Assembly (NCBI GenBank): GCA_964057225.1
Contig: OZ059900.1
Coordinates: forward strand, 6,758,001-6,822,000
Direction of reading: 5' to 3'
Length of the DNA: 64,000 nucleotides
Source of the DNA: Auanema rhodensis
Lineage: Eukaryota > Animalia > Nematoda
Below the pieces are notes generated by a model. That model made no database searches. It worked only from the letters and a program-made list of their open reading frames with translations, and had not been told where the DNA came from. A program made the translations under genes and the position numbers. How positions within the stretch are numbered: position 1 is the first letter of the stretch; each line of letters begins with the position of its first letter. Below, piece by piece: positions 5,309-31,900 of this stretch.

Positions 5309-11745
<6,437 letters not shown>

Positions 11746-14229
11746 ATGGACCATGAACTTTGAATCAATAACCATGATTCTACCGCGAGAACTAAGTGGA
11801 CGATCATGTTATATTGCACGCAATTTCAAATATGCGTGCCCCACACTTTTGTGTCTTCTTGTTCTCTTTTTATTCGGGGACCTCTCTTCAAATCTCAATT
11901 TAGTAGCTTAAATTTACCCTATCCTCACAAGTTTATTTATAAATTTCGTTTGGTTTTACTTTTCTTTTTTCCTTACGATCCGATTCCTATATAATCTGAA
12001 TATAGAAGCTATTATTATATGCATATAGCTATTTGTATGTATATACATCTATATGATCTGTAAGTATGTAAATTCTTTTTTTCGTGAAAATTTCCGGAAC
12101 TTCGGTATTCACTCGTGTATTTAGCTTTTCGTTTTCCTTTCCCGTTTCATATATACTAACTTGTTCTCTATTTTTGTAGAGAAGTGTAGAAGCTATCGCA
12201 ATGCTGAGCAGACGAAGTGCTCTTTTCTCTTTGAAAAAATCAGTCGTGTCATCTTGTTTCCAATTCAGCATTATACTGTTCAGCATGCATTTTGGGTTTC
12301 AGCTCCTGTTCTTTTTTTTTCTCTCCGAATTAATACTATTGCACTGCTCAGTTCCTGTAAATTTGTGTGGTTCAACAATTACGAGCATTTTTGTCCGGTT
12401 TATCAATGAAAAAAACCAATTTTTTTGATATGATCTGATGGCGTACACTATATATTTCATATATAAAATCAAATTTGTCCTTAACTATGATGTTTCACTC
12501 ATTATCGTGGTACCCTCTTTTTTTTCAAACCTTTACTAGTTACCCTTATTCGGTCTTAGTGCTTTTAGATGTTTCTCCGATATCTAATTCATGTGCTAAT
12601 CTGTGTACGAAAACACAAAAAAGACAAAAACTTGATACTAGGTAGCGATAATCGTGCTCTGACTGTTGTTCATTTTGTTTCAAAGAATTCTGTAGTTATT
12701 CGATTTAAAAACAAAGCTATTATGCACATGAATATGTTATTGGAGATACATGCTTTCATTTGTTTTTGCTTTAGCTCTTAGTGAACAGTTCCTGATATTA
12801 TTATCTAATATTTCTCTCGTTTATTTTGTATGTATTTTATATATAGGGTAGCCTTATCCTGGCTCATTTTTCTGTAGTAAGCATTGTTTGCAAGCATTCA
12901 TTGAATACATATAGAGATTTATACAGGAAAAATTATAGATATGTATTGATTGAATGTGCATAATAATTGCTTATTGTATATGTATAGTATTAGTTAAATG
13001 ACACATTTTGGGCCTGAAATTAGAAAGAGCGATTCTCTTATTGTGAAACGGTTGTTTTTGTTCTGGTTCTTGACTATCTGTTGACAAATGCTATTAGTAG
13101 TGAAAAAAATCTATCTATCTACATGAATTGTGTTTTAAATTAAGGATATTGACAACTCATTGCAACTTTCCTATTGCATTTTATAAAAATACTGCACAAC
13201 ACACGAAGACACAATAAAAATTAATGTCAAAACTTATCTGATTAATTCGGAAACTAATGTGTTTGGAATGTTTTTTAGTCAAAAAAGTTTGAGATCTTCT
13301 AAACATCTAAATTTACTCTATTGAAGTTTAAATTGAAGTTAAACAATGAAGGAATGTAAGTTTATGAATGAATACACTAGAATCACTAGTTAAAATATAA
13401 TAAATTTAATTATTAATATAATATGGAATCTCTTTTCAAAATGAATGAAAACTTTAGAAGTTTGATAAAAGAGGTTTGGTAGCAAGCGTACAATCCTGCC
13501 TACATTATTCTACATAAACTCTTTTATAACGATTCTTGTATGCAATGCTTTCTTTTTAATTTGATTGAAAATCTTGATGTCTTGGTAGAGTAGTGTAGAA
13601 TATGTAGACTGGAAAACTGAAACTGCAATTTTCAATCTCACTTGTTAGAGATAAAACGGACAAGTATGCTGTCTCTTCGATAACAACAATTTTTTACCAC
13701 TTGCGTTAAGAAGGCTACAAAAGTTAAGATAATGAAATATTCTGTTACAATTTCTTACAGTGAACTAACTTGGATTTGAGAACTTATAACAGTAACTGGA
13801 GTTTTGTGTGAGAGATGGCGGATACTCTAACTGTCTAATTTTCAGTCCTCCACTATTTTTCTATGCGTTGGATATTTGCGTGATCTCAAATAGTTTGAAA
13901 ACGATGCATTTTATACCCAGACATTAAAAGAACACTGTCGCGTGGATACTACAAAGGCAGTTTAGCCGTCATGAACAATAAATGACCGAAAGAAGTGCAC
14001 ATTGAAATCGTTTTTCTACCGTTTCTACACTTGAAACTGACCGTTGATGACTAGAGTACATTCAAAAAATAGAACCAATTCAATAGAATTCCGAAATTCT
14101 TAAACATATCGAGAAGTTTCTTCAGTGAAAATTATAGGGAATAGTCAATTCGAGAAAACTAAAAAAAATCATTTGATTCATTAATATATTTTTTCATAAT
14201 GAAAAGTCTTTAAGAAATATTGGCAATAC

Positions 14230-14235
14230 TTTATT
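14230..14235 (-). terminator. Polyadenylation signal of the Cys-rich peptide gene
   Basis: AATAAA on the minus strand ~70 nt downstream of the stop codon. Confidence 0.55.
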
Positions 14236-14306
14236 AAAAGAAAACTTGAGCTACATAAAATTCCACTTTTTAGAATATGGATGTAGTGTAACTGTTTTTC
14301 TTGTCA

Positions 14307-14545
14307 TCAGTATCGGGAGGGATTAAGCGCAGAGCTTGGTACGCATTGCTCGAGATAACAAGAATATCCTGGTTGGCAGAGGTTATTAATGCATGGTCCA
14401 ACAGCCAAATCAAAAATGGTAGCAGCTGAAATATGTTAATAAATACTGTATAATTTTAAAATTTATGAAGAATCACTCAATTTAAAAACCAACCTTGAGA
14501 GAAAGCCAAGATGGCGAAGAAAACCAGGATGAGAGCACGGATCAT
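14307..14545 (-). CDS. Small secreted cysteine-rich peptide (56 aa), resembling the nematode CC domain
   Basis: Exons 14545-14494 and 14425-14307, joined by a GT...TTTCAG phase-1 intron, give MIRALILVFFAILAFSQAATIFDLAVGPCINNLCQPGYSCYLEQCVPSSALNPSRY*. It has a hydrophobic signal peptide, a GPC-x4-C-xx-GY-x-C-x4-C pattern and a tandem TGA TGA stop. An upstream TATATAA and a downstream AATAAA lie on the same strand. Confidence 0.85.
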
Positions 14546-14631
14546 GGTGAGGAAGGTAGTTTGAAAAAGTCGTAAAGCAAAGATAAAGAGAAAAAGAGCT
14601 GAGGCTTGTTCACTGTTCCGAAAAAATTGTC

Positions 14632-14638
14632 TTATATA
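14632..14638 (-). promoter_or_regulatory. TATA box of the Cys-rich peptide gene
   Basis: TATATAA on the minus strand ~90 bp upstream of the ATG at 14545. Confidence 0.55.
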
Positions 14639-15668
14639 GTGAAGCAGGCGGTCAGTACATTAAGAACCCCTTATTTACATTCAAACAAGAATAACAAGTA
14701 AATGATTCTTATTTTCAGTTAATTTCCGGCTTCTTTGTGTGAACTAGCACGACAACATCTAAGTGATCTTTGGTTATATGAAAAAGGTTTCCATTGTTGA
14801 AGTCTTGAGTGAAAACTTGTCACAAATATTAATAGTATTATGCCCGTACAGACATGCTGCTTGAGATTCGTTGGTGTAATCGACTGAGCAAATATCAGGC
14901 AGTCGTCACAATCTGTTTCCCATAGTTTTGAATGTAGTCGTCTCACTGAGTTCTCAGCGATGAAATGATCAAGAGTAAAGAGAAAATCTTAAATTAACTT
15001 TTGAAAACATGTTTACACATAGATATAGATAAATTAAAAGGAAGAGATAATTCATAAACAAACAGGACAATACTCTGATACATTGGGATACTTTGAAAGT
15101 TTTGATGGTAAAATCTAAATGTATTTATTCTTCTTAAAATTGTTTTAACGTGCACAAACTGGCACCAACTAATAACATAACAAATATTTTTTGATCTTTC
15201 TCTCTATAGCATATTATTACAAAAAATACAATTAATTTAAATTGATTTATTGGATAGGTATTATAGTTCATACTGTAAACCAATCTGAGCAACAACATCC
15301 TTCTAACATATGAATCAAGTTTCTGTACTACATGGCCTTATCGGTTATTTGAAAATCTGGAAATTAATTCGTGGAACTTTTCAAATCGAATTCGGTAAAA
15401 TACAAATTGAACCGCAATGCAAAGGATATAAACATGATAGGTAATAGAAAAAAAATTTAATTAATTCATTAAAATAAAAATTTTGAATTTTGGGACAACA
15501 TAGTTGTATATTGGCTTAGTTGTAGTTGTAGTTTAAACAATATAAAAAACAAATTTGAAAATTTTATTTTTTTTCCCGCATTTTTTTAAAATAATAATGT
15601 TGTTAATAATAAATAATTCTCATTATTTCTTTCTCTCATTTTTTTTGTGTTTTTCGCTTAAGACCATA

Positions 15669-18600
15669 ATATAACTTGCTTGTTCCTGAAAGCTGCAGAT
15701 AAGTTTCTGCCATCTTATGATGTAAGTCGTAAGTTGATTGAAAATGAAGATTTCATTAAAACCAATCAGATTTTATGAGGTAAATGAAACATTTTCTTTT
15801 TTCAAGTTAAATATTATAATTTTGGAACTTTCTCCTGATACATTTCGCGCAATTGATAGTGTTACTGCTTTGGTCCAAGTGAATGATGAAGGAATTCTTA
15901 GTTTTGAAAAAGTTGAATTGATCAGTCCAACTAAGAATGCAACACATTATCTTGAATCATCTTGCTTTATTTTTACTTTATTCAGCTTTAATTTCTTTGA
16001 CCAACTTTTAAGCCCTTTAGCAGAATATACTAAGACGGTACATTTTGATTGACTTGTCAAATAAGAGCAGAAGTCAAACATGGTGTCCAATGGGATAGTA
16101 AGATACATTTAGAATCTGTATACCTTAAAATTCTGGAAACAACCTGTTATATGAACTCAACCCTTCATACTCAATTTACTTAACATTTTCAAGGGTATGA
16201 TATGATATCGCATGGTAATTCAAATATTTTTTCACAGGCGGTTTTTGAAAAGCCACCAACAAATGATAGAGACGACAATAGTGTTGCTTTGGCTGTGCAA
16301 CGTGTATTCTACGATCTTCAGGTACATTACATACCATCAAGTGAGCATCAAATATTTTGTTTCAGCACTCAGATCGTCCTGTAGGAACAAAAAAACTGAC
16401 CAAATCTTTCGGATAGGACTTGGTTGATTCTTGGTCCTGTTTTTGGTCAACAACCTGGGGAAAAAGACGTCTTTTTACTGCTCAAAGTTCACAAAGGTAT
16501 GATAACATATCACATTGTCATACTTGTTAGAAGATTTACTATATCAATGATATTTCTTTTCAGCAGCTAAGCTACAGTAATGGCATATCTGAAAGAACTT
16601 TCGAACAAACTCTAAATGAAGATATAACTTGCTTGTTCCTGGAAGCTGCAGATGAGTTTCTGCCATCTTATGATGTAAGTGGTAGGTTGATTGAAAATGA
16701 AGATTTCATTAAAACCAATCAGATTTTATGAGGTAAATGAAACATTTTCTTTTTTCAAGTTAAATATTATAATTTTGGAACTTTCTCCTGATACATTTCG
16801 CGCAATTGATAGTGTTACTGCTTTGGTCCAAGTGAATGATGAAGGAATTCTTAGTTTTGAAAAAGTTGAATTGATCAGTCCAACTAAGAATGCAACACAT
16901 TATCTTGAATCATCTTGCTTTATTTTTACTTTATTCAGCTTTAATTTCTTTGACCAACTTTTAAGCCCTTTAGCAGAATATACTAAGACGGTACATTTTG
17001 ATTGACTTGTCAAATAAGAGCAGAAGTCAAACATGGTGTCCAATGGGATAGTAAGATACATTTAGAATCTGTATACCTTAAAATTCTGGAAACAACCTGT
17101 TATATGAACTCAACCCTTCATACTCAATTTACTTAACATTTTCAAGGGTATGATATGATATCGCATGGTAATTCAAATATTTTTTCACAGGCGGTTTTTG
17201 AAAAGCCACCAACAAATGATAGAGACGACAATAGTGTTGCTTTGGCTGTGCAACGTGTATTCTACGATCTTCAGGTACATTACATACCATCAAGTGAGCA
17301 TCAAATATTTTGTTTCAGCACTCAGATCGTCCTGTAGGAACAAAAAAACTGACCAAATCTTTCGGATAGGACTTGGTTGATTCTTGGTCCTGTTTTTGGT
17401 CAACAACCTGGGGAAAAAGACGTCTTTTTACTGCTCAAAGTTCACAAAGGTATGATAACATATCACATTGTCATACTTGTTAGAAGATTTACTATATCAA
17501 TGATATTTCTTTTCAGCAGCTAAGCTACAGTAATGGCATATCTGAAAGAACTTTCGAACAAACTCTAAATGAAGATATAACTTGCTTGTTCCTGGAAGCT
17601 GCAGATGAGTTTCTGCCATCTTATGATGTAAGTGGTAAGTTGATTGAAAATGAAGATTTCATTAAAACCAATCAGATTTTATGAGGTAAATGAAACATTT
17701 TCTTTTTTCAAGTTAAATATTATAATTTTGGAACTTTCTCCTGATACATTTCGCGCAATTGATAGTGTTACTGCTTTGGTCCAAGTGAATGATGAAGGAA
17801 TTCTTAGTTTTGAAAAAGTTGAATTGATCAGTCCAACTAAGAATGCAACACATTATCTTGAATCATCTTGCTTTATTTTTACTTTATTCAGCTTTAATTT
17901 CTTTGACCAACTTTTAAGCCCTTTAGCAGAATATACTAAGACGGTACATTTTGATTGACTTGTCAAATAACAGCAGAAGTCAAACATGGTGTCCAATGGG
18001 ATAGTAAGATACATTTAGAATCTGTATACCTTAAAATTCTGGAAACAACCTGTTATATGAACTCAACCCTTCATACTCAATTCACTTAACATTTTCAAGG
18101 GTATGATATGATATCGCATGGTAATTCAAATATTTTTTCACAGGCGGTTTTTGAAAAGCAACCAACAAATGATAGAGACGACAATAGTGTTGCTTTGGCT
18201 GTGCAACGTGTATTCTACGATCTTCAGGTACATTACATACCATCAAGTGAGCATCAAATATTTTGTTTCAGCACTCAGATCGTCCTGTAGGAACAAAAAA
18301 ACTGACCAAATCTTTCGGATAGGACTTGGTTGATTCTTGGTCCTGTTTTTGGTTAACAACCTGGGGAAAAAGACGTCTTTTTACTGCTCAAAGTTCACAA
18401 AGGTATGATAACATATCACATTGTCATACTTGTTAGAAGATTTACTATATCAATGATATTTCTTTTCAGCAGCTAAGCTACAGTAATGGCATATCTGAAA
18501 GAACTTTCGAACAAACTCTAAATGAAGATATAACTTGCTTGTTCCTGGAAGCTGCAGATGAGTTTCTGCCATCTTATGATGTAAGTGGTAAGTTGATTGA

Positions 18601-21600
18601 AAATGAAGATTTCATTAAAACCAATCAGATTTTATGAGGTAAATGAAACATTTTCTTTTTTCAAGTTAAATATTATAATTTTGGAACTTTCTCCTGATAC
18701 ATTTCGCGCAATTGATAGTGTTACTGCTTTGGTCCAAGTGAATGATGAAGGAATTCTTAGTTTTGAAAAAGTTGAATTGATCAGTCCAACTAAGAATGCA
18801 ACACATTATCTTGAATCATCTTGCTTTATTTTTACTTTATTCAGCTTTAATTTCTTTGACCAACTTTTAAGCCCTTTAGCAGAATATACTAAGACGGTAC
18901 ATTTTGATTGACTTGTCAAATAAGAGCAGAAGTCAAACATGGTGTCCAATGGGATAGTAAGATACATTTAGAATCTGTATACCTTAAAATTCTGGAAACA
19001 ACCTGTTATATGAACTCAACCCTTCATACTCAATTTACTTAACATTTTCAAGGGTATGATATGATATCGCATGGTAATTCAAATATTTTTTCACAGGCGG
19101 TTTTTGAAAAGCAACCAACAAATGATAGAGACGACAATAGTGTTGCTTTGGCTGTGCAACGTGTATTCTACGATCTTCAGGTACATTACATACCATCAAG
19201 TGAGCATCAAATATTTTGTTTCAGCACTCAGATCGTCCTGTAGGAACAAAAAAACTGACCAAATCTTTCGGATAGGACTTGGTTGATTCTTGGTCCTGTT
19301 TTTGGTCAACAACCTGGGGAAAAAGACGTCTTTTTACTGCTCAAAGTTCACAAAGGTATGATAACATATCACATTGTCATACTTGTTAGAAGATTTACTA
19401 TATCAATGATATTTCTTTTCAGCAGCTAAGCTACAGTAATGGCATATCTGAAAGAACTTTCGAACAAACTCTAAATGAAGATATAACTTGCTTGTTCCTG
19501 GAAGCTGCAGATGAGTTTCTGCCATCTTATGATGTAAGTGGTAAGTTGATTGAAAATGAAGATTTCATTAAAACCAATCAGATTTTATGAGGTAAATGAA
19601 ACATTTTCTTTTTTCAAGTTAAATATTATAATTTTGGAACTTTCTCCTGATACATTTCGCGCAATTGATAGTGTTACTGCTTTGGTCCAAGTGAATGATG
19701 AAGGAATTCTTAGTTTTGAAAAAGTTGAATTGATCAGTCCAACTAAGAATGCAACACATTATCTTGAATCATCTTGCTTTATTTTTACTTTATTCAGCTT
19801 TAATTTCTTTGACCAACTTTTAAGCCCTTTAGCAGAATATACTAAGACGGTACATTTTGATTGACTTGTCAAATAACAGCAGAAGTCAAACATGGTGTCC
19901 AATGGGATAGTAAGATACATTTAGAATCTGTATACCTTAAAATTCTGGAAACAACCTGTTATATGAACTCAACCCTTCATACTCAATTTACTTAACATTT
20001 TCAAGGGTATGATATGATATCGCATGGTAATTCAAATATTTTTTCACAGGCGGTTTTTGAAAAGCCACCAACAAATGATAGAGACGACAATAGTGTTGCT
20101 TTGGCTGTGCAACGTGTATTCTACGATCTTCAGGTACATTACATACCATCAAGTGAGCATCAAATATTTTGTTTCAGCACTCAGATCGTCCTGTAGGAAC
20201 AAAAAAACTGACCAAATCTTTCGGATAGGACTTGGTTGATTCTTGGTCCTGTTTTTGGTCAACAACCTGGGGAAAAAGACGTCTTTTTACTGCTCAAAGT
20301 TCACAAAGGTATGATAACATATCACATTGTCATACTTGTTAGAAGATTTACTATATCAATGATATTTCTTTTCAGCAGCTAAGCTACAGTAATGGCATAT
20401 CTGAAAGAACTTTCGAACAAACTCTAAATGAAGATATAACTTGCTTGTTCCTGGAAGCTGCAGATGAGTTTCTGCCATCTTATGATGTAAGTGGTAAGTT
20501 GATTGAAAATGAAGATTTCATTAAAACCAATCAGATTTTATGAGGTAAATGAAACATTTTCTTTTTTCAAGTTAAATATTATAATTTTGGAACTTTCTCC
20601 TGATACATTTCGCGCAATTGATAGTGTTACTGCTTTGGTCCAAGTGAATGATGAAGGAATTCTTAGTTTTGAAAAAGTTGAATTGATCAGTCCAACTAAG
20701 AATGCAACACATTATCTTGAATCATCTTGCTTTATTTTTACTTTATTCAGCTTTAATTTCTTTGACCAACTTTTAAGCCCTTTAGCAGAATATACTAAGA
20801 CGGTACATTTTGATTGACTTGTCAAATAAGAGCAGAAGTCAAACATGGTGTCCAATGGGATAGTAAGATACATTTAGAATCTGTATACCTTAAAATTCTG
20901 GAAACAACCTGTTATATGAACTCAACCCTTCATACTCAATTTACTTAACATTTTCAAGGGTATGATATGATATCGCATGGTAATTCAAATATTTTTTCAC
21001 AGGCGGTTTTTGAAAAGCCACCAACAAATGATAGAGACGACAATAGTGTTGCTTTGGCTGTGCAACGTGTATTCTACGATCTTCAGGTACATTACATACC
21101 ATCAAGTGAGCATCAAATATTTTGTTTCAGCACTCAGATCGTCCTGTAGGAACAAAAAAACTGACCAAATCTTTCGGATAGGACTTGGTTGATTCTTGGT
21201 CCTGTTTTTGGTCAACAACCTGGGGAAAAAGACGTCTTTTTACTGCTCAAAGTTCACAAAGGTATGATAACATATCACATTGTCATACTTGTTAGAAGAT
21301 TTACTATATCAATGATATTTCTTTTCAGCAGCTAAGCTACAGTAATGGCATATCTGAAAGAACTTTCGAACAAACTCTAAATGAAGATATAACTTGCTTG
21401 TTCCTGGAAGCTGCAGATGAGTTTCTGCCATCTTATGATGTGAGTGGTAAGTTGATTGAAAATGAAGATTTCATTAAAACCAATCAGATTTTATGAGGTA
21501 AATGAAACATTTTCTTTTTTCAAGTTAAATATTATAATTTTGGAACTTTCTCCTGATACATTTCGCGCAATTGATAGTGTTACTGCTTTGGTCCAAGTGA

Positions 21601-24600
21601 ATGATGAAGGAATTCTTAGTTTTGAAAAAGTTGAATTGATCAGTCCAACTAAGAATGCAACACATTATCTTGAATCATCTTGCTTTATTTTTACTTTATT
21701 CAGCTTTAATTTCTTTGACCAACTTTTAAGCCCTTTAGCAGAATATACTAAGACGGTACATTTTGATTGACTTGTCAAATAAGAGCAGAAGTCAAACATG
21801 GTGTCCAATGGGATAGTAAGATACATTTAGAATCTGTATACCTTAAAATTCTGGAAACAACCTGTTATATGAACTCAACCCTTCATACTCAATTTACTTA
21901 ACATTTTCAAGGGTATGATATGATATCGCATGGTAATTCAAATATTTTTTCACAGGCGGTTTTTGAAAAGCAACCAACAAATGATAGAGACGACAATAGT
22001 GTTGCTTTGGCTGTGCAACGTGTATTCTACGATCTTCAGGTACATTACATACCATCAAGTGAGCATCAAATATTTTGTTTCAGCACTCAGATCGTCCTGT
22101 AAGAACAAAAAAACTGACCAAATCTTTCGGATAGGACTTGGTTGATTCTTGGTCCTGTTTTTGGTCAACAACCTGGGGAAAAAGACGTCTTTTTACTGCT
22201 CAAAGTTCACAAAGGTATGATAACATATCACATTGTCATACTTGTTAGAAGATTTACTATATCAATGATATTTCTTTTCAGCAGCTAAGCTACAGTAATG
22301 GCATATCTGAAAGAACTTTCGAACAAACTCTAAATGAAGATATAACTTGCTTGTTCCTGGAAGCTGCAGATGAGTTTCTGCCATCTTATGATGTAAGTGG
22401 TAAGTTGATTGAAAATGAAGATTTCATTAAAACCAATCAGATTTTATGAGGTAAATGAAACATTTTCTTTTTTCAAGTTAAATATTATAATTTTGGAACT
22501 TTCTCCTGATACATTTCGCGCAATTGATAGTGTTACTGCTTTGGTCCAAGTGAATGATGAAGGAATTCTTAGTTTTGAAAAAGTTGAATTGATCAGTCCA
22601 ACTAAGAATGCAACACATTATCTTGAATCATCTTGCTTTATTTTTACTTTATTCAGCTTTAATTTCTTTGACCAACTTTTAAGCCCTTTAGCAGAATATA
22701 CTAAGACGGTACATTTTGATTGACTTGTCAAATAACAGCAGAAGTCAAACATGGTGTCCAATGGGATAGTAAGATACATTTAGAATCTGTATACCTTAAA
22801 ATTCTGGAAACAACCTGTTATATGAACTCAACCCTTCATACTCAATTTACTTAACATTTTCAAGGGTATGATATGATATCGCATGGTAATTCAAATATTT
22901 TTTCACAGGCGGGTTTTGAAAAGCAACCAACAAATGATAGAGACGACAATAGTGTTGCTTTGGCTGTGCAACGTGTATTCTACGATCTTCAGGTACATTA
23001 CATACCATCAAGTGAGCATCAAATATTTTGTTTCAGCACTCAGATCGTCCTGTAGGAACAAAAAAACTGACCAAATCTTTCGGATAGGACTTGGTTGATT
23101 CTTGGTCCTGTTTTTGGTTAACAACCTGGGGAAAAAGACGTCTTTTTACTGCTCAAAGTTCACAAAGGTATGATAACATATCACATTGTCATACTTGTTA
23201 GAAGATTTACTATATCAATGATATTTCTTTTCAGCAGCTAAGCTACAGTAATGGCATATCTGAAAGAACTTTCGAACAAACTCTAAATGAAGATATAACT
23301 TGCTTGTTCCTGGAAGCTGCAGATGAGTTTCTGCCATCTTATGATGTAAGTGGTAAGTTGATTGAAAATGAAGATTTCATTAAAACCAATCAGATTTTAT
23401 GAGGTAAATGAAACATTTTCTTTTTTCAAGTTAAATATTATAATTTTGGAACTTTCTCCTGATACATTTCGCGCAATTGATAGTGTTACTGCTTTGGTCC
23501 AAGTGAATGATGAAGGAATTCTTAGTTTTGAAAAAGTTGAATTGATCAGTCCAACTAAGAATGCAACACATTATCTTGAATCATCTTGCTTTATTTTTAC
23601 TTTATTCAGCTTTAATTTCTTTGACCAACTTTTAAGCCCTTTAGCAGAATATACTAAGACGGTACATTTTGATTGACTTGTCAAATAAGAGCAGAAGTCA
23701 AACATGGTGTCCAATGGGATAGTAAGATACATTTAGAATCTGTATACCTTAAAATTCTGGAAACAACCTGTTATATGAACTCAACCCTTCATACTCAATT
23801 TACTTAACATTTTCAAGGGTATGATATGATATCGCATGGTAATTCAAATATTTTTTCACAGGCGGTTTTTGAAAAGCAACCAACAAATGATAGAGACGAC
23901 AATAGTGTTGCTTTGGCTGTGCAACGTGTATTCTACGATCTTCAGGTACATTACATACCATCAAGTGAGCATCAAATATTTTGTTTCAGCACTCAGATCG
24001 TCCTGTAGGAACAAAAAAACTGACCAAATCTTTCGGATAGGACTTGGTTGATTCTTGGTCCTGTTTTTGGTCAACAACCTGGGGAAAAAGACGTCTTTTT
24101 ACTGCTCAAAGTTCACAAAGGTATGATAACATATCACATTGTCATACTTGTTAGAAGATTTACTATATCAATGATATTTCTTTTCAGCAGCTAAGCTACA
24201 GTAATGGCATATCTGAAAGAACTTTCGAACAAACTCTAAATGAAGATATAACTTGCTTGTTCCTGGAAGCTGCAGATGAGTTTCTGCCATCTTATGATGT
24301 AAGTGGTAAGTTGATTGAAAATGAAGATTTCATTAAAACCAATCAGATTTTATGAGGTAAATGAAACATTTTCTTTTTTCAAGTTAAATATTATAATTTT
24401 GGAACTTTCTCCTGATACATTTCGCGCAATTGATAGTGTTACTGCTTTGGTCCAAGTGAATGATGAAGGAATTCTTAGTTTTGAAAAAGTTGAATTGATC
24501 AGTCCAACTAAGAATGCAACACATTATCTTGAATCATCTTGCTTTATTTTTACTTTATTCAGCTTTAATTTCTTTGACCAACTTTTAAGCCCTTTAGCAG

Positions 24601-27600
24601 AATATACTAAGACGGTACATTTTGATTGACTTGTCAAATAAGAGCAGAAGTCAAACATGGTGTCCAATGGGATAGTAAGATACATTTAGAATCTGTATAC
24701 CTTAAAATTCTGGAAACAACCTGTTATATGAACTCAACCCTTCATACTCAATTTACTTAACATTTTCAAGGGTATGATATGATATCGCATGGTAATTCAA
24801 ATATTTTTTCACAGGCGGTTTTTGAAAAGCAACCAACAAATGATAGAGACGACAATAGTGTTGCTTTGGCTGTGCAACGTGTATTCTACGATCTTCAGGT
24901 ACATTACATACCATCAAGTGAGCATCAAATATTTTGTTTCAGCACTCAGATCGTCCTGTAGGAACAAAAAAACTGACCAAATCTTTCGGATAGGACTTGG
25001 TTGATTCTTGGTCCTGTTTTTGGTCAACAACCTGGGGAAAAAGACGTCTTTTTACTGCTCAAAGTTCACAAAGGTATGATAACATATCACATTGTCATAC
25101 TTGTTAGAAGATTTACTATATCAATGATATTTCTTTTCAGCAGCTAAGCTACAGTAATGGCATATCTGAAAGAACTTTCGAACAAACTCTAAATGAAGAT
25201 ATAACTTGCTTGTTCCTGGAAGCTGCAGATGAGTTTCTGCCATCTTATGATGTAAGTGGTAAGTTGATTGAAAATGAAGATTTCATTAAAACCAATCAGA
25301 TTTTATGAGGTAAATGAAACATTTTCTTTTTTCAAGTTAAATATTATAATTTTGGAACTTTCTCCTGATACATTTCGCGCAATTGATAGTGTTACTGCTT
25401 TGGTCCAAGTGAATGATGAAGGAATTCTTAGTTTTGAAAAAGTTGAATTGATCAGTCCAACTAAGAATGCAACACATTATCTTGAATCATCTTGCTTTAT
25501 TTTTACTTTATTCAGCTTTAATTTCTTTGACCAACTTTTAAGCCCTTTAGCAGAATATACTAAGACGGTACATTTTGATTGACTTGTCAAATAAGAGCAG
25601 AAGTCAAACATGGTGTCCAATGGGATAGTAAGATACATTTAGAATCTGTATACCTTAAAATTCTGGAAACAACCTGTTATATGAACTCAACCCTTCATAC
25701 TCAATTTACTTAACATTTTCAAGGGTATGATATGATATCGCATGGTAATTCAAATATTTTTTCACAGGCGGTTTTTGAAAAGCCACCAACAAATGATAGA
25801 GACGACAATAGTGTTGCTTTGGCTGTGCAACGTGTATTCTACGATCTTCAGGTACATTACATACCATCAAGTGAGCATCAAATATTTTGTTTCAGCACTC
25901 AGATCGTCCTGTAGGAACAAAAAAACTGACCAAATCTTTCGGATAGGACTTGGTTGATTCTTGGTCCTGTTTTTGGTCAACAACCTGGGGAAAAAGACGT
26001 CTTTTTACTGCTCAAAGTTCACAAAGGTATGATAACATATCACATTGTCATACTTGTTAGAAGATTTACTATATCAATGATATTTCTTTTCAGCAGCTAA
26101 GCTACAGTAATGGCATATCTGAAAGAACTTTCGAACAAACTCTAAATGAAGATATAACTTGCTTGTTCCTGGAAGCTGCAGATGAGTTTCTGCCATCTTA
26201 TGATGTGAGTGGTAAGTTGATTGAAAATGAAGATTTCATTAAAACCAATCAGATTTTATGAGGTAAATGAAACATTTTCTTTTTTCAAGTTAAATATTAT
26301 AATTTTGGAACTTTCTCCTGATACATTTCGCGCAATTGATAGTGTTACTGCTTTGGTCCAAGTGAATGATGAAGGAATTCTTAGTTTTGAAAAAGTTGAA
26401 TTGATCAGTCCAACTAAGAATGCAACACATTATCTTGAATCATCTTGCTTTATTTTTACTTTATTCAGCTTTAATTTCTTTGACCAACTTTTAAGCCCTT
26501 TAGCAGAATATACTAAGACGGTACATTTTGATTGACTTGTCAAATAAGAGCAGAAGTCAAACATGGTGTCCAATGGGATAGTAAGATACATTTAGAATCT
26601 GTATACCTTAAAATTCTGGAAACAACCTGTTATATGAACTCAACCCTTCATACTCAATTTACTTAACATTTTCAAGGGTATGATATGATATCGCATGGTA
26701 ATTCAAATATTTTTTCACAGGCGGTTTTTGAAAAGCAACCAACAAATGATAGAGACGACAATAGTGTTGCTTTGGCTGTGCAACGTGTATTCTACGATCT
26801 TCAGGTACATTACATACCATCAAGTGAGCATCAAATATTTTGTTTCAGCACTCAGATCGTCCTGTAGGAACAAAAAAACTGACCAAATCTTTCGGATAGG
26901 ACTTGGTTGATTCTTGGTCCTGTTTTTGGTCAACAACCTGGGGAAAAAGACGTCTTTTTACTGCTCAAAGTTCACAAAGGTATGATAACATATCACATTG
27001 TCATACTTGTTAGAAGATTTACTATATCAATGATATTTCTTTTCAGCAGCTAAGCTACAGTAATGGCATATCTGAAAGAACTTTCGAACAAACTCTAAAT
27101 GAAGATATAACTTGCTTGTTCCTGGAAGCTGCAGATGAGTTTCTGCCATCTTATGATGTAAGTGGTAAGTTGATTGAAAATGAAGATTTCATTAAAACCA
27201 ATCAGATTTTATGAGGTAAATGAAACATTTTCTTTTTTCAAGTTAAATATTATAATTTTGGAACTTTCTCCTGATACATTTCGCGCAATTGATAGTGTTA
27301 CTGCTTTGGTCCAAGTGAATGATGAAGGAATTCTTAGTTTTGAAAAAGTTGAATTGATCAGTCCAACTAAGAATGCAACACATTATCTTGAATCATCTTG
27401 CTTTATTTTTACTTTATTCAGCTTTAATTTCTTTGACCAACTTTTAAGCCCTTTAGCAGAATATACTAAGACGGTACATTTTGATTGACTTGTCAAATAA
27501 CAGCAGAAGTCAAACATGGTGTCCAATGGGATAGTAAGATACATTTAGAATCTGTATACCTTAAAATTCTGGAAACAACCTGTTATATGAACTCAACCCT

Positions 27601-28972
27601 TCATACTCAATTTACTTAACATTTTCAAGGGTATGATATGATATCGCATGGTAATTCAAATATTTTTTCACAGGCGGTTTTTGAAAAGCAACCAACAAAT
27701 GATAGAGACGACAATAGTGTTGCTTTGGCTGTGCAACGTGTATTCTACGATCTTCAGGTACATTACATACCATCAAGTGAGCATCAAATATTTTGTTTCA
27801 GCACTCAGATCGTCCTGTAGGAACAAAAAAACTGACCAAATCTTTCGGATAGGACTTGGTTGATTCTTGGTCCTGTTTTTGGTCAACAACCTGGGGAAAA
27901 AGACGTCTTTTTACTGCTCAAAGTTCACAAAGGTATGATAACATATCACATTGTCATACTTGTTAGAAGATTTACTATATCAATGATATTTCTTTTCAGC
28001 AGCTAAGCTACAGTAATGGCATATCTGAAAGAACTTTCGAACAAACTCTAAATGAAGATATAACTTGCTTGTTCCTGGAAGCTGCAGATAAGTTTCTGCC
28101 ATCTTATGATGTAAGTCTTAAGTTGATTGAAAATGAAGATTTCATTCAAACCAATCAGATTCTATGAGGTAAATGAAACATTTTCTTTTTTCAAGTTAAA
28201 TATTATAATTTTGGAACTTTCTCCTGATACATTTCGCGCAATTGATAGTGTTACTGCTTTGGTCCGAGTGAATGATGAAGGAATTCTTAGTTTTGAAAAA
28301 GTTGAATTGATCAGTCCAACTAAGAATGCAACACATTATCTTGAATCATCTTGCTTTATTTTTACTTTATTCAGCTTTAATTTCTTTGACCAACTTTTAA
28401 GCCCTTTAGCAGAATATACTAAGACGGTACATTTTGATTGACTTGTCAAATAACAGCAGAAGTCAAACATGGTGTCCAATGGGATAGTAAGATACATTTA
28501 GAATCTGTATACCTTAAAATTCTGGAAACAACCTGTTATATGAACTCAACCCTTCATACTCAATTTACTTAACATTTTCAAGGGTATGATATGATATCGC
28601 ATGGTAATTCAAATATTTTTTCACAGGCGGTTTTTGAAAAGCAACCAACAAATGATAGAGACGACAATAGTGTTGCTTTGGCTGTGCAACGTGTATTCTA
28701 CGATCTTCAGGTACATTACATACCATCAAGTGAGCATCAAATATTTTGTTTCAGCACTCAGATCGTCCTGTAGGAACAAAAAAACTGACCAAATCTTTCG
28801 GATAGGACTTGGTTGATTCTTGGTCCTGTTTTTGGTCAACAACCTGGGGAAAAAGACGTCTTTTTACTGCTCAAAGTTCACAAAGGTATGATAACATATC
28901 ACATTGTCATACTTGTTAGAAGATTTACTATATCAATGATATTTCTTTTCAGCAGCTAAGCTGCAGTAATGG
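15669..28972 (+). repeat. Tandem array A: ~14 copies of a 953-bp monomer made of scrambled USP7 fragments
   Basis: Near-identical ORFs recur every 953 bp (15738, 16691 ... 28127), and copies differ by only a few SNPs. The monomer maps to USP7 segments ~9999-10090, 10248-10466, 8018-8484, 8849-8890, 8222-8272 and 9897-9998, in that order, including intron sequence. Confidence 0.97.
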
Positions 28973-31900
28973 CAGATCAGAAAGAAGTGTCGACCAATTT
29001 TTAAATGGAGATAGAACAAGATGGAAGACTTCTTTCAAATCTCATTTTCTATTCGATGATGTCCTATCAATTGTCTCAGTACCCTTTGCTCCCATCTCCA
29101 ACTATGGAGATAAAGATGTAGAAATACCTGTCAGAAACTTCAATAGTGCATTTATGCAACTATTTATTCGGCAGGAAGCAAACAATATACGGTAAAAATT
29201 TAAATTTTAATCGTTTATTTTTCATTAGGACCTTACTATTCCAATTGACTGATATGGAAAATCCACAACATACCCGTTTTCGTTTCGGACAAGAAAGTTT
29301 GGAAAACAACTGGTGTAATAAAGAAAAAATATAAGTTTATTTGTACATAGAAATTTTATTATATCAATATCATTTCATTTTGGAAGCTCAGTTACAGTAG
29401 TGGCAGATCAGAAAGAAGTGTCGACCAATTTTTAAATGGAGATAGAACAAGATGGAAGACTTCTTTCAAATCTCATTTTCTATTCGATGATGTCCTATCA
29501 ATTGTCTCAGTACCCGTTGCTCCCATCTTCAACTATGGAGACAAAGATGTAGGAATACCTGTCAGAAACTTCAATAGTGCATTTATGCAACTATTTATTC
29601 GGCAGGAAGCAAACAATATACGGTAAAAATTTAAATTTTAATCGTTTATTTTTCATTAGGACCTTACTATTCCAATTGACTGATATGGAAAATCCACAAC
29701 ATACCCGTTTTCGTTTCGGACAAGAAAGTTTGGAAAACAACTGGTGTAATAAAGAAAAAATATAAGTTTATTTGTACATAGAAATTTTATTATATCAATA
29801 TTATTTCATTTTGGAAGCTCAGTTACAGTAGTGGCAGATCAGAAAGAAGTGTCGACCAATTTTTAAATGGAGATAGAACAAGATGGAAGACTTCTTTCAA
29901 ATCTCATTTTCTATTCGATGATGTCCTATCAATTGTCTCAGTACCCGTTGCTCCCATCTTCAACTATGGAGACAAAGATGTAGGAATACCTGTCAGAAAC
30001 TTCAATAGTGCATTTATGCAACTATTTATTCGGCAGGAAGCAAACAATATACGGTAAAAATTTAAATTTTAATCGTTTATTTTTCATTAGGACCTTACTA
30101 TTCCAATTGACTGATATGGAAAATCCACAACATACCCGTTTTCGTTTCGGACAAGAAAGTTTGGAAAACAACTGGTGTAATAAAGAAAAAATATAAGTTT
30201 ATTTGTACATAGAAATTTTATTATATCAATATTATTTCATTTTGGAAGCTCAGTTACAGTAGTGGCAGATCAGAAAGAAGTGTCGACCAATTTTTAAATG
30301 GAGATAGAACAAGATGGAAGACTTCTTTCAAATCTCATTTTCTATTCGATGATGTCCTATCAATTGTCTCAGTACCCGTTGCTCCCATCTTCAACTATGG
30401 AGACAAAGATGTAGAAATACCTGTCAGAAACTTCAATAGTGCATTTATGCAACTATTTATTCGGCAGGAAGCAAACAATATACGGTAAAAATTTAAATTT
30501 TAATCGTTTATTTTTCATTAGGACCTTACTATTCCAATTGACTGATATGGAAAATCCACAACATACCCGTTATCGTTTCGGACAAGAAAGTTCGGAAAAC
30601 AACTGGTGTAATAAAGAAAAAATATAAGTTTATTTGTACATAGAAATTTTATTATATCAATATTATTTCATTTTGGAAGCTCAGTTACAGTAGTGGCAGA
30701 TCAGAAAGAAGTGTCGACCAATTTTTAAATGGAGATAGAACAAGATGGAAGACTTCTTTCAAATCTCATTTTCTATTCGATGATGTCCTATCAATTGTCT
30801 CAGTACCCGTTGCTCCCATCTTCAACTATGGAGACAAAGATGTAGAAATACCTGTCAGAAACTTCAATAGTGCATTTATGCAACTATTTATTCGGCAGGA
30901 AGCAAACAATATACGGTAAAAATTTAAATTTTAATCGTTTATTTTTCATTAGGACCTTACTATTCCAATTGACTGATATGGAAAATCCACAACATACCCG
31001 TTTTCGTTTCGGACAAGAAAGTTTGGAAAACAACTGGTGTAATAAAGAAAAAATATAAGTTTATTTGTACATAGAAATTTTATTATATCAATATTATTTC
31101 ATTTTGGAAGCTCAGTTACAGTAGTGACAGATCAGAAAGAAGTGTCGACCAATTTTTAAATGGAGATAGAACAAGATGGAAGACTTCTTTCAAATCTCAT
31201 TTTCTATTCGATGATGTCCTATCAATTGTCTCAGTACCCGTTGCTCCCATCTTCAACTATGGAGACAAAGATGTAGAAATACCTGTCAGAAACTTCAATA
31301 GTGCATTTATGCAACTATTTATTCGGCAGGAAGCAAACAATATACGGTAAAAATTTAAATTTTAATCGTTTATTTTTCATTAGGACCTTACTATTCCAAT
31401 TGACTGATATGGAAAATCCACAACATACCCGTTTTCGTTTCGGACAAGAAAGTTCGGAAAACAACTGGTGTAATAAAGAAAAAATATAAGTTTATTTGTA
31501 CATAGAAATTTTATTATATCAATATTATTTCATTTTGGAAGCTCAGTTACAGTAGTGGCAGATCAGAAAGAAGTGTCGACCAATTTTTAAATGGAGATAG
31601 AACAAGATGGAAGACTTCTTTCAAATCTCATTTTCTATTCGATGATGTCCTATCAATTGTCTCAGTACCCGTTGCTCCCATCTCCAACTATGGAGATAAA
31701 GATGTAGAAATACCTGTCAGAAACTTCAATAGTGCATTTATGCAACTATTTATTCGGCAGGAAGCAAACAATATACGGTAAAAATTTAAATTTTAATCGT
31801 TTATTTTTCATTAGGACCTTACTATTCCAATTGACTGATATGGAAAATCCACAACATACCCGTTTTCGTTTCGGACAAGAAAGTTCGGAAAACAACTGGT

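Follow-up and report, generated by a model that had tools for sequence, protein, structure and literature searches.

A satellite unit that reads as a colinear, deleted copy of the neighbouring USP7 gene with one out-of-order piece in the nematode Auanema rhodensis

We analysed a stretch of 64,000 nucleotides from the nematode Auanema rhodensis (assembly GCA_964057225.1, contig OZ059900.1, positions 6,758,001 to 6,822,000 of the forward strand; below, the window, in whose coordinates gene positions are also given). It holds an intact USP7 gene and, downstream of it, array A, a tandem array with a 953-bp unit. Judged by its sequence, this unit is a DNA-level partial copy of the neighbouring USP7 gene and a noncoding satellite. 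A preliminary description of the same DNA had seen in it a six-segment, out-of-order mosaic. Of that picture, one piece of 42-55 bp from the exon-5/intron-5 boundary is indeed out of order, while the rest is colinear with the gene once the unit is rotated. We favour, with a probability of about 0.55, the reading that this small piece is a templated insertion at a deletion joint.

The unit follows the order of the gene apart from one small piece

The parent gene lies on the plus strand, is intact and intron-rich (introns of 43-53 bp) and has open frames and splice sites in the interval from which the unit derives. Its exons, searched one by one and not as a joined spliced model, match the Pfam families UCH, USP7_ICP0_bdg and USP7_C2, each on a separate exon, and the exon with the catalytic-Cys box aligns with USP7 in the PDB (E=1e-26, Cys box aligned), as expected of a USP7 gene. 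A genome-wide search of the 181-Mb assembly (112 contigs, 180.9 Mb), which scored the best candidates only and which very decayed copies could escape, yielded no second USP7 gene and, beyond the 14 copies of array A, no further copies of the 953-bp unit or of its joins. The gene is thus single-copy. With USP7 single-copy and the joins confined to these 14 copies, this gene is the only possible source of the unit.

BLAST of the first unit returned gene matches at 8021-8483, 8849-8893, 9896-9998, 9999-10083 and 10248-10466, and local alignment of unit positions 798-853 to gene 8218-8272 gave 48 matches out of 55. Together these place every segment to within a few bases of where it had been put before (Table 1). 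They also bear out that the exon-5/intron-5 boundary occurs twice per unit, at window approximately 16171-16213 and 16474-16521. The longest segment, unit 291-762, contains exons 5 and 6, the former with the catalytic-Cys box, together with introns 5 and 6, and the out-of-order piece consists of the last 23 nt of exon 5 and the first 19-25 nt of intron 5. The 21-bp gap within unit 93-290 can be placed equally at gene 10353-10373 or 10354-10374.

Table 1. Features of the USP7-derived satellite locus. Positions are window coordinates; joins are written as the last gene base before and the first gene base after the breakpoint.
Feature	Position	Strand	Gene interval	Description
Source interval in USP7	8018..10466	+	8018-10466	intron 4 to exon 16, 2,449 bp
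Unit 1-92	15669..15760	+	9999-10090	rest of exon 14 and 5' part of intron 14
Unit 93-290	15761..15958	+	10248-10352 and 10374-10466	end of exon 15, intron 15, 5' exon 16
Unit 291-762	15959..16430	+	8018-8483	3' intron 4 through 5' part of exon 7
Unit 763-805	16431..16473	+	8848-8890	43-bp internal piece of exon 9
Unit 806-847/853	16474..16521	+	8225-8266/72	sole out-of-order piece
Unit 848-953	16516..16621	+	9896-9998	intron 13 minus its first 5 nt, and 5' exon 14
Join J1			8483/8848	exact overlap 2 nt; 364-bp deletion
Join J2			8890/8225	exact overlap 1 nt; left edge of small piece
Join J3			8266/9896	exact overlap 0 nt; right edge of small piece
Join J4			10090/10248	exact overlap 0 nt; 157-bp deletion
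Join J5			10353-10373	exact overlap 1 nt; 21-bp deletion
Join J6			10466/8018	exact overlap 0 nt; head-to-tail join
Array A	15669..29010	+		953-bp unit in 14 copies, head to tail (full-length matches when the first unit is searched against the window by BLAST)
Array B	to approximately 49 kb			431-bp unit
Array C	beyond the window, to approximately 91.6 kb (window-equivalent)			451-bp unit
1,024-bp direct repeat, left copy	14162..15185	+		480 bp left of array A

To assess colinearity, the consensus was rotated to start at unit position 291 and aligned globally to the gene. The rotated unit runs in gene order from 8018 to 10466, the small piece excepted, with deletions of 364 bp, approximately 1,005 bp, 157 bp and 21 bp; the gene parts missing from it are 8484-8847, 8891-9895, 10091-10247 and 10353-10373. 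A colinear copy, which the preliminary description had set against its own mosaic, is therefore largely what this alignment returns. Two of the apparent irregularities dissolve. Segments 1 and 6 of the supposed mosaic are contiguous in the gene (9896-10090), unit 1-92 being the continuation of unit 848-953 of the preceding copy, and they look split because array A starts mid-unit at 15669. In addition, one of the two backward joins (10466 to 8018) is the head-to-tail join that is obligatory in any tandem repeat, and is no sign of shuffling. Just past this join, at window 15959-15990, the unit is 11 bp longer than the gene, the CTTTATT motif of intron 4 having been duplicated locally.

A DNA-level copy that became a satellite

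Four introns (5, 6, 13 and 15) are retained in the unit, and two more (4 and 14) in part. Its deletion ends all fall inside exons (7, 9, 15 and 16) or introns (13 and 14) and none coincides with a splice site, so that the removal of introns at splice sites that marks a processed pseudogene is not seen here. A retrocopy or other RNA-derived origin of the unit is ruled out by the kept introns and by the absence of deletion ends at splice sites.

Identity between unit and gene is 85.1% in exons and 85.2% in introns, and the exon-5 part of the unit contains two TGA and one TAA codon. Equal divergence in exons and introns, together with these stop codons, indicates that the unit is free of coding constraint. 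A trimer of the unit holds no open frame above 104 amino acids, in keeping with satellite DNA, which has no coding capacity. No Rfam family match was found in the flank or in the 953-bp unit. Divergence from the gene is uneven along the unit: positions 536-762 (window 16204-16430; gene 8263-8483) are 92% identical to it versus 81% for the rest (Fisher p=3e-5). On the left, this stretch is bounded by the point at which the source of the small piece ends (8266, 3' side), and on the right by join J1; to its left, the equivalent of gene 8195-8262 is unusually diverged (approximately 60-70% identical) and has two small deletions. The 92% stretch could reflect gene conversion by the live gene, or it could be a younger segment.

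Array A has many near-identical head-to-tail copies, as expected of a satellite, in a window that is AT-rich (GC approximately 33%). The copies are 99.3-100% identical, the last, hybrid copy excepted, and copies 1-13 differ from the consensus at 0-4 sites. All joins are present in all 14 copies and therefore predate the present amplification, which upholds the earlier proposal that the rearrangements came first. At its left edge the array starts sharply, mid-unit, at 15669, and no homology was found left of this start. At the other end, the last copy passes in register into the 431-bp type of array B from approximately unit position 906; the switch lies at window 28963-29010, inside the exon-14 block that the two arrays share. 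The A/B border is thus a homologous, in-phase transition and not a random junction.

Variants within array A tend to recur every five units: copies 1, 6 and 11 have one at unit position 586, copies 3, 8 and 13 at 397, and copies 7 and 12 at 56. The mean number of differences between copies is 1.33 at lag 5 versus approximately 2 at other lags. We take this as a weak hint of recent duplication in 5-unit (4.8 kb) blocks.

These observations also bear on the explanation that array A is an assembly artefact, or that its repeat came from a spliced transcript. Long satellite arrays are hard to assemble and array A is perfectly periodic. Against this, the copies carry both individual and shared variants and unique sequence flanks the array within a contig of 26.9 Mb, while the retained introns and the position of the deletion ends away from splice sites exclude a transcript. 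We regard either version as extremely unlikely.

Similarity at the joins is concentrated at the edges of the small piece

For each join, the gene sequence past the left breakpoint was compared in register with the gene sequence before the right breakpoint, and 200,000 random breakpoint pairs from gene 8000-10500 served as the null (mean overlap 0.74 nt; P=0.18 for an overlap of at least 2 nt). The preliminary description had proposed short shared words at the joins and a comparison of their lengths with random expectation. By classical exact overlap there is no excess, with four of the six joins at chance level (0-2 nt), and homology of at least 1 nt occurs at two of the four simple joins, against a chance of 46%.

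The word ATC (10464/8018), put forward as microhomology at the head-to-tail join, fails as such, since the unit retains the word from either side (ATCATC), with an overlap of 0 nt. For an abutting 3-mer of this kind, p is 0.025 at a single join and falls short of significance once all six joins are considered, and the ATCTTG 6-mer near J6 has p=0.10 in any register. The other two words are better founded. GTCTT/TTCTTT (8886/8221) reflects in-register similarity at J2, where 10 of 16 positions within ±8 nt match (p=0.0035), although the exact overlap is just 1 nt. GTAAT (8268/9897) is a real shared 5-mer at J3 (8 of 16 in-register matches, p=0.04; 5-nt run, p=0.014), but the best-fitting breakpoint lies 1 nt before it. 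The sum for J2 and J3 has p=0.0004-0.004 with windows of ±6 to ±12 and 0.025 at ±5, before allowing for the picking of two joins out of six, while that for the other four is at chance level (p=0.26-0.70). Allowing for six joins or 15 pairs, the excess similarity at J2 and J3 is suggestive rather than decisive. What is left of the proposed serial microhomology-mediated switching or end joining is therefore this similarity at J2 and J3, the remaining four joins being at chance level.

The joins allow another view, in which the source was shattered in a single catastrophic event and its pieces re-ligated at random by classical end joining. The four joins with 0-2 nt overlap resemble blunt end joining, and J1, J2 and J3 are clustered within approximately 90 bp. 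Nevertheless, all pieces keep their strand and all but one keep their order (for five pieces, orientation alone has a probability of 1/32), and the excess similarity at J2 and J3 argues against blunt joining there. Inverted or shuffled variants of the unit are, moreover, absent elsewhere in this genome. Such an event is very unlikely in our judgement.

The small piece and its probable donor

Genome-wide, the small piece occurs in the gene, in the 14 copies of array A and in one relic at C8:6849783-6849832 (91783-91832 in window coordinates), which lies 75 kb downstream, on the far edge of array C. The insert in array A is 95-97% identical to the relic and 88% identical to the gene. The relic stays gene-like beyond the 3' join of the insert, showing that it was not derived from array A. 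Insert, relic and the unit's own copy of the boundary share three changes relative to the gene, one G>C and two in intron 5. The G>C falls in the Arg codon of the FRK motif, and since this Arg is conserved in human USP7 (LRK), the change is derived. The three shared changes indicate that insert, relic and own copy come from one pseudogene lineage, so that the small piece comes from that lineage and not from the live gene. The unit's own boundary copy (approximately 16171-16213) is strongly diverged, being approximately 60-65% identical over the stretch of the insert.

In the unit, the piece 8225-8266/72 sits between 8890 and 9896, at the largest deletion, and its source lies approximately 625 bp upstream of the left breakpoint in gene coordinates. 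A short segment copied from nearby and placed at a breakpoint is what template switching would leave.

The relic and its surroundings look like a second such case. The interval C8:6849670-6850670 (window-equivalent 91670-92670), between arrays C and D, holds USP7 scraps in the order gene 9202-9313, 8229-8277, approximately 550 bp of A-rich DNA, 12226-12161 (inverted, weak), 10168-10272, 8301-8323 and 9368 onward. The join 10272/8301 shares AAAT (4 nt). Both 8229-8277 and 8301-8323 lie between the equivalents of gene 9313 and gene 9368 in a B/C/D-type unit (91.7-92.6 kb), with approximately 730 bp of A-rich sequence plus two further gene scraps between them. Read as one event, these scraps look like a templated piece of approximately 95 bp at a 54-bp deletion.

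This raises the question of whether the same piece, approximately 50 bp from the exon-5/intron-5 boundary of the dead USP7 copy, served as template more than once: at the big deletion joint of array A, and at the 54-bp gap in a B/C/D-type unit 75 kb away. The left edges of the two insertions are nearly alike (8225-8233 vs 8229). We consider repeated use doubtful. If it did happen, the piece would be a recurrent template-switch donor, or a fragment preferred for a feature of its own, its 5' splice site for example, and the locus would be a natural record of serial template switching while a satellite was being born, in a nematode whose soma is cleared of repeats.

An older array of longer units and its flanks

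Arrays B and C are built from gene 9258/9202-9558 and approximately 9910-10005, and in the exon-14 block (gene 9910-10005) the same derived changes are found in all three arrays, A included. Overlapping gene intervals thus stand side by side in the same phase, which points to an older head-to-tail array of a longer unit. The earlier suggestion of deletions within an older head-to-tail USP7 duplication survives in this reduced form, the long-unit array being implied independently of the joins. More arrays follow beyond C to approximately 108 kb, and the whole USP7-derived complex extends over approximately 93 kb.

The complex is bracketed by a 1,024-bp direct repeat with exactly two copies in the genome; the right copy, C8:6868149-6869172, is on the same strand, 99% identical to the left one and located just past the right end of the complex, where it adjoins a sequence that matches window 12537-12599 at 80%. 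The 1,562 bp between the two left-flank pieces are unique in the genome and hence not a transposon family. The flank repeats suggest an old tandem segmental duplication of the 3' part of USP7 and its flank, in which a 1-kb piece was later gene-converted.

Between the last USP7-derived array and the right flank, at window-equivalent approximately 104000-109300, there are approximately 5 kb of purine-rich (GA/A-rich) low-complexity repeats, and a similar A-rich tract is present at window-equivalent 91840-92390. A search of 124 kb for 29-nt palindromes (14-nt arms, at most 2 mismatches), a stand-in for the elimination motif as it appears in passages of an Auanema preprint (bioRxiv 10.64898/2026.08.27.747507), found none outside the arrays.

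Proposed history and the main alternative

We propose that a tandem segmental duplication of the 3' part of USP7 and its downstream flank gave rise to a dead, decaying copy, and that this copy, spanning at least intron 4 to exon 16, may have become a head-to-tail array of long (2.45-kb) units, ancestral to A, B and C. The units would then have shrunk through end-joining deletions without notable homology (J1, J4 and J5). At the largest deletion (8891-9895), we infer a template switch during repair or replication, with short imperfect homology as the priming site; approximately 42-55 nt would have been copied from a sister copy of the exon-5/intron-5 boundary, with a return switch at GTAAT. The adjoining 43-bp piece of exon 9 may belong to the same event. 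Finally, the 953-bp variant would have been amplified, and homogenised to approximately 99.5% by unequal exchange.

The same older array offers an alternative without any template switch, in which the unit condenses two neighbouring 2.45-kb units: one deletion would have taken the DNA from 8891 of one unit to 8224 of the next, another 8267-9895 of that next unit, leaving 42 bp over. The shared derived changes and the in-register A/B/C transitions that imply the long-unit array suit this account, as does the common strand of the gene-derived pieces across the approximately 93-kb complex, barring one weak inverted match (gene 3' flank, 74% over 66 bp). The two boundary copies in the unit are strongly different, like old paralogues from neighbouring units, and with six pieces making up 953 bp, small leftovers are no surprise (P=0.36). 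What two deletions leave unexplained is the excess similarity at exactly J2 and J3 and not at J1, J4, J5 or J6, a pairing with a chance of approximately 1 in 15. They also require one event more than a templated insertion, and the gap at the distal relic, just 54 bp, would be rare (approximately 4%) from two independent deletions. We hold this alternative to be possible but on balance unlikely. The templated insertion is ranked above it because excess similarity is found only at J2 and J3 and because of the analogous distal relic.

Several points weigh against a templated insertion. The p-values for J2 and J3 are post hoc and become approximately 0.02 and 0.08 after correction for six joins, and strict parsimony sets J3 one base before GTAAT, giving 0 nt exact overlap. 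The present gene, at 15-20% divergence, only stands in for the molecules that were joined, which leaves an uncertainty of a few bases at each breakpoint. The unit's own boundary copy is approximately 65-68% like the insert, and the donor is therefore not identifiable. The flank repeat, at 99%, does not match the gene-derived parts at approximately 80-85%, unless gene conversion intervened. An insert of 42-55 nt from approximately 625 bp away is longer and more distant in origin than those of polymerase theta (PMC4490562). Finally, the 42-43 bp islands are not unusually small for six pieces (broken-stick P=0.36; adjacent, P=0.18); we had considered their size as evidence for template switching and dropped it.

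Comparison with known systems

Like gene-derived satellites (reviews such as PMC5615363), array A is head-to-tail, near-identical through concerted evolution, noncoding, located beside its parent and decayed. It differs from them in that the parent is intact approximately 5 kb away, introns are recognisable, and six joints can be read base by base; moreover, three sister arrays with different units stem from the same dead copy. The Auanema rhodense germ-line genome, as described in passages of the preprint cited above, is 180 Mb in size and very rich in tandem repeats, with multi-megabase arrays of 167-504 nt units (bioRxiv 10.64898/2026.08.27.747507). Array A, with 13 kb and a 953-bp unit, is unlike these, and those passages contain no USP7-derived array. 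We found no published report of a USP7-derived satellite in the literature.

As an example of a satellite that arose from a gene, array A is clear but ordinary, and it reveals no new mechanism or function. Satellites usually have no traceable origin. Here, the parent gene, remnants of the dead copy, three sister arrays and every joint can be read, providing a worked example of how a gene fragment becomes a satellite. The locus also shows which joints bear signs of homology-primed copying, and the shuffled six-part mosaic gives way to a colinear deleted copy with one probably templated piece.

As to mechanism, fork stalling and template switching (FoSTeS) and microhomology-mediated break-induced replication (MMBIR) are replication-based forms of template switching that produce complex rearrangements. 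Array A resembles their products in its short pieces (43 and 42-55 bp) at a deletion joint, in a nearby source in direct orientation, and in short, partly imperfect homology at the switch points. It differs in that no piece is inverted, homology is seen at two of the six joins, and the event is ancient, viewed through 15-20% divergence. Deletions made by polymerase-theta end joining in C. elegans germ cells show single-nucleotide homology, at least 1 nt being shared at approximately 80% of simple deletion joins, and now and then carry a templated insert (PMC4490562). The 0-2 nt of homology in array A and an insert probably templated from the flank recall these scars (PMC4490562, PMC4032859). 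Polymerase-theta inserts, however, are copied from close to the break and most of the deletions are small, whereas in array A the source lies approximately 625 bp from the left breakpoint, the deletions measure 157-1,005 bp and homology at the simple joins is no commoner than chance. By this comparison, replication-type template switching appears to be the better fit for the small piece, given its greater length and more distant source.

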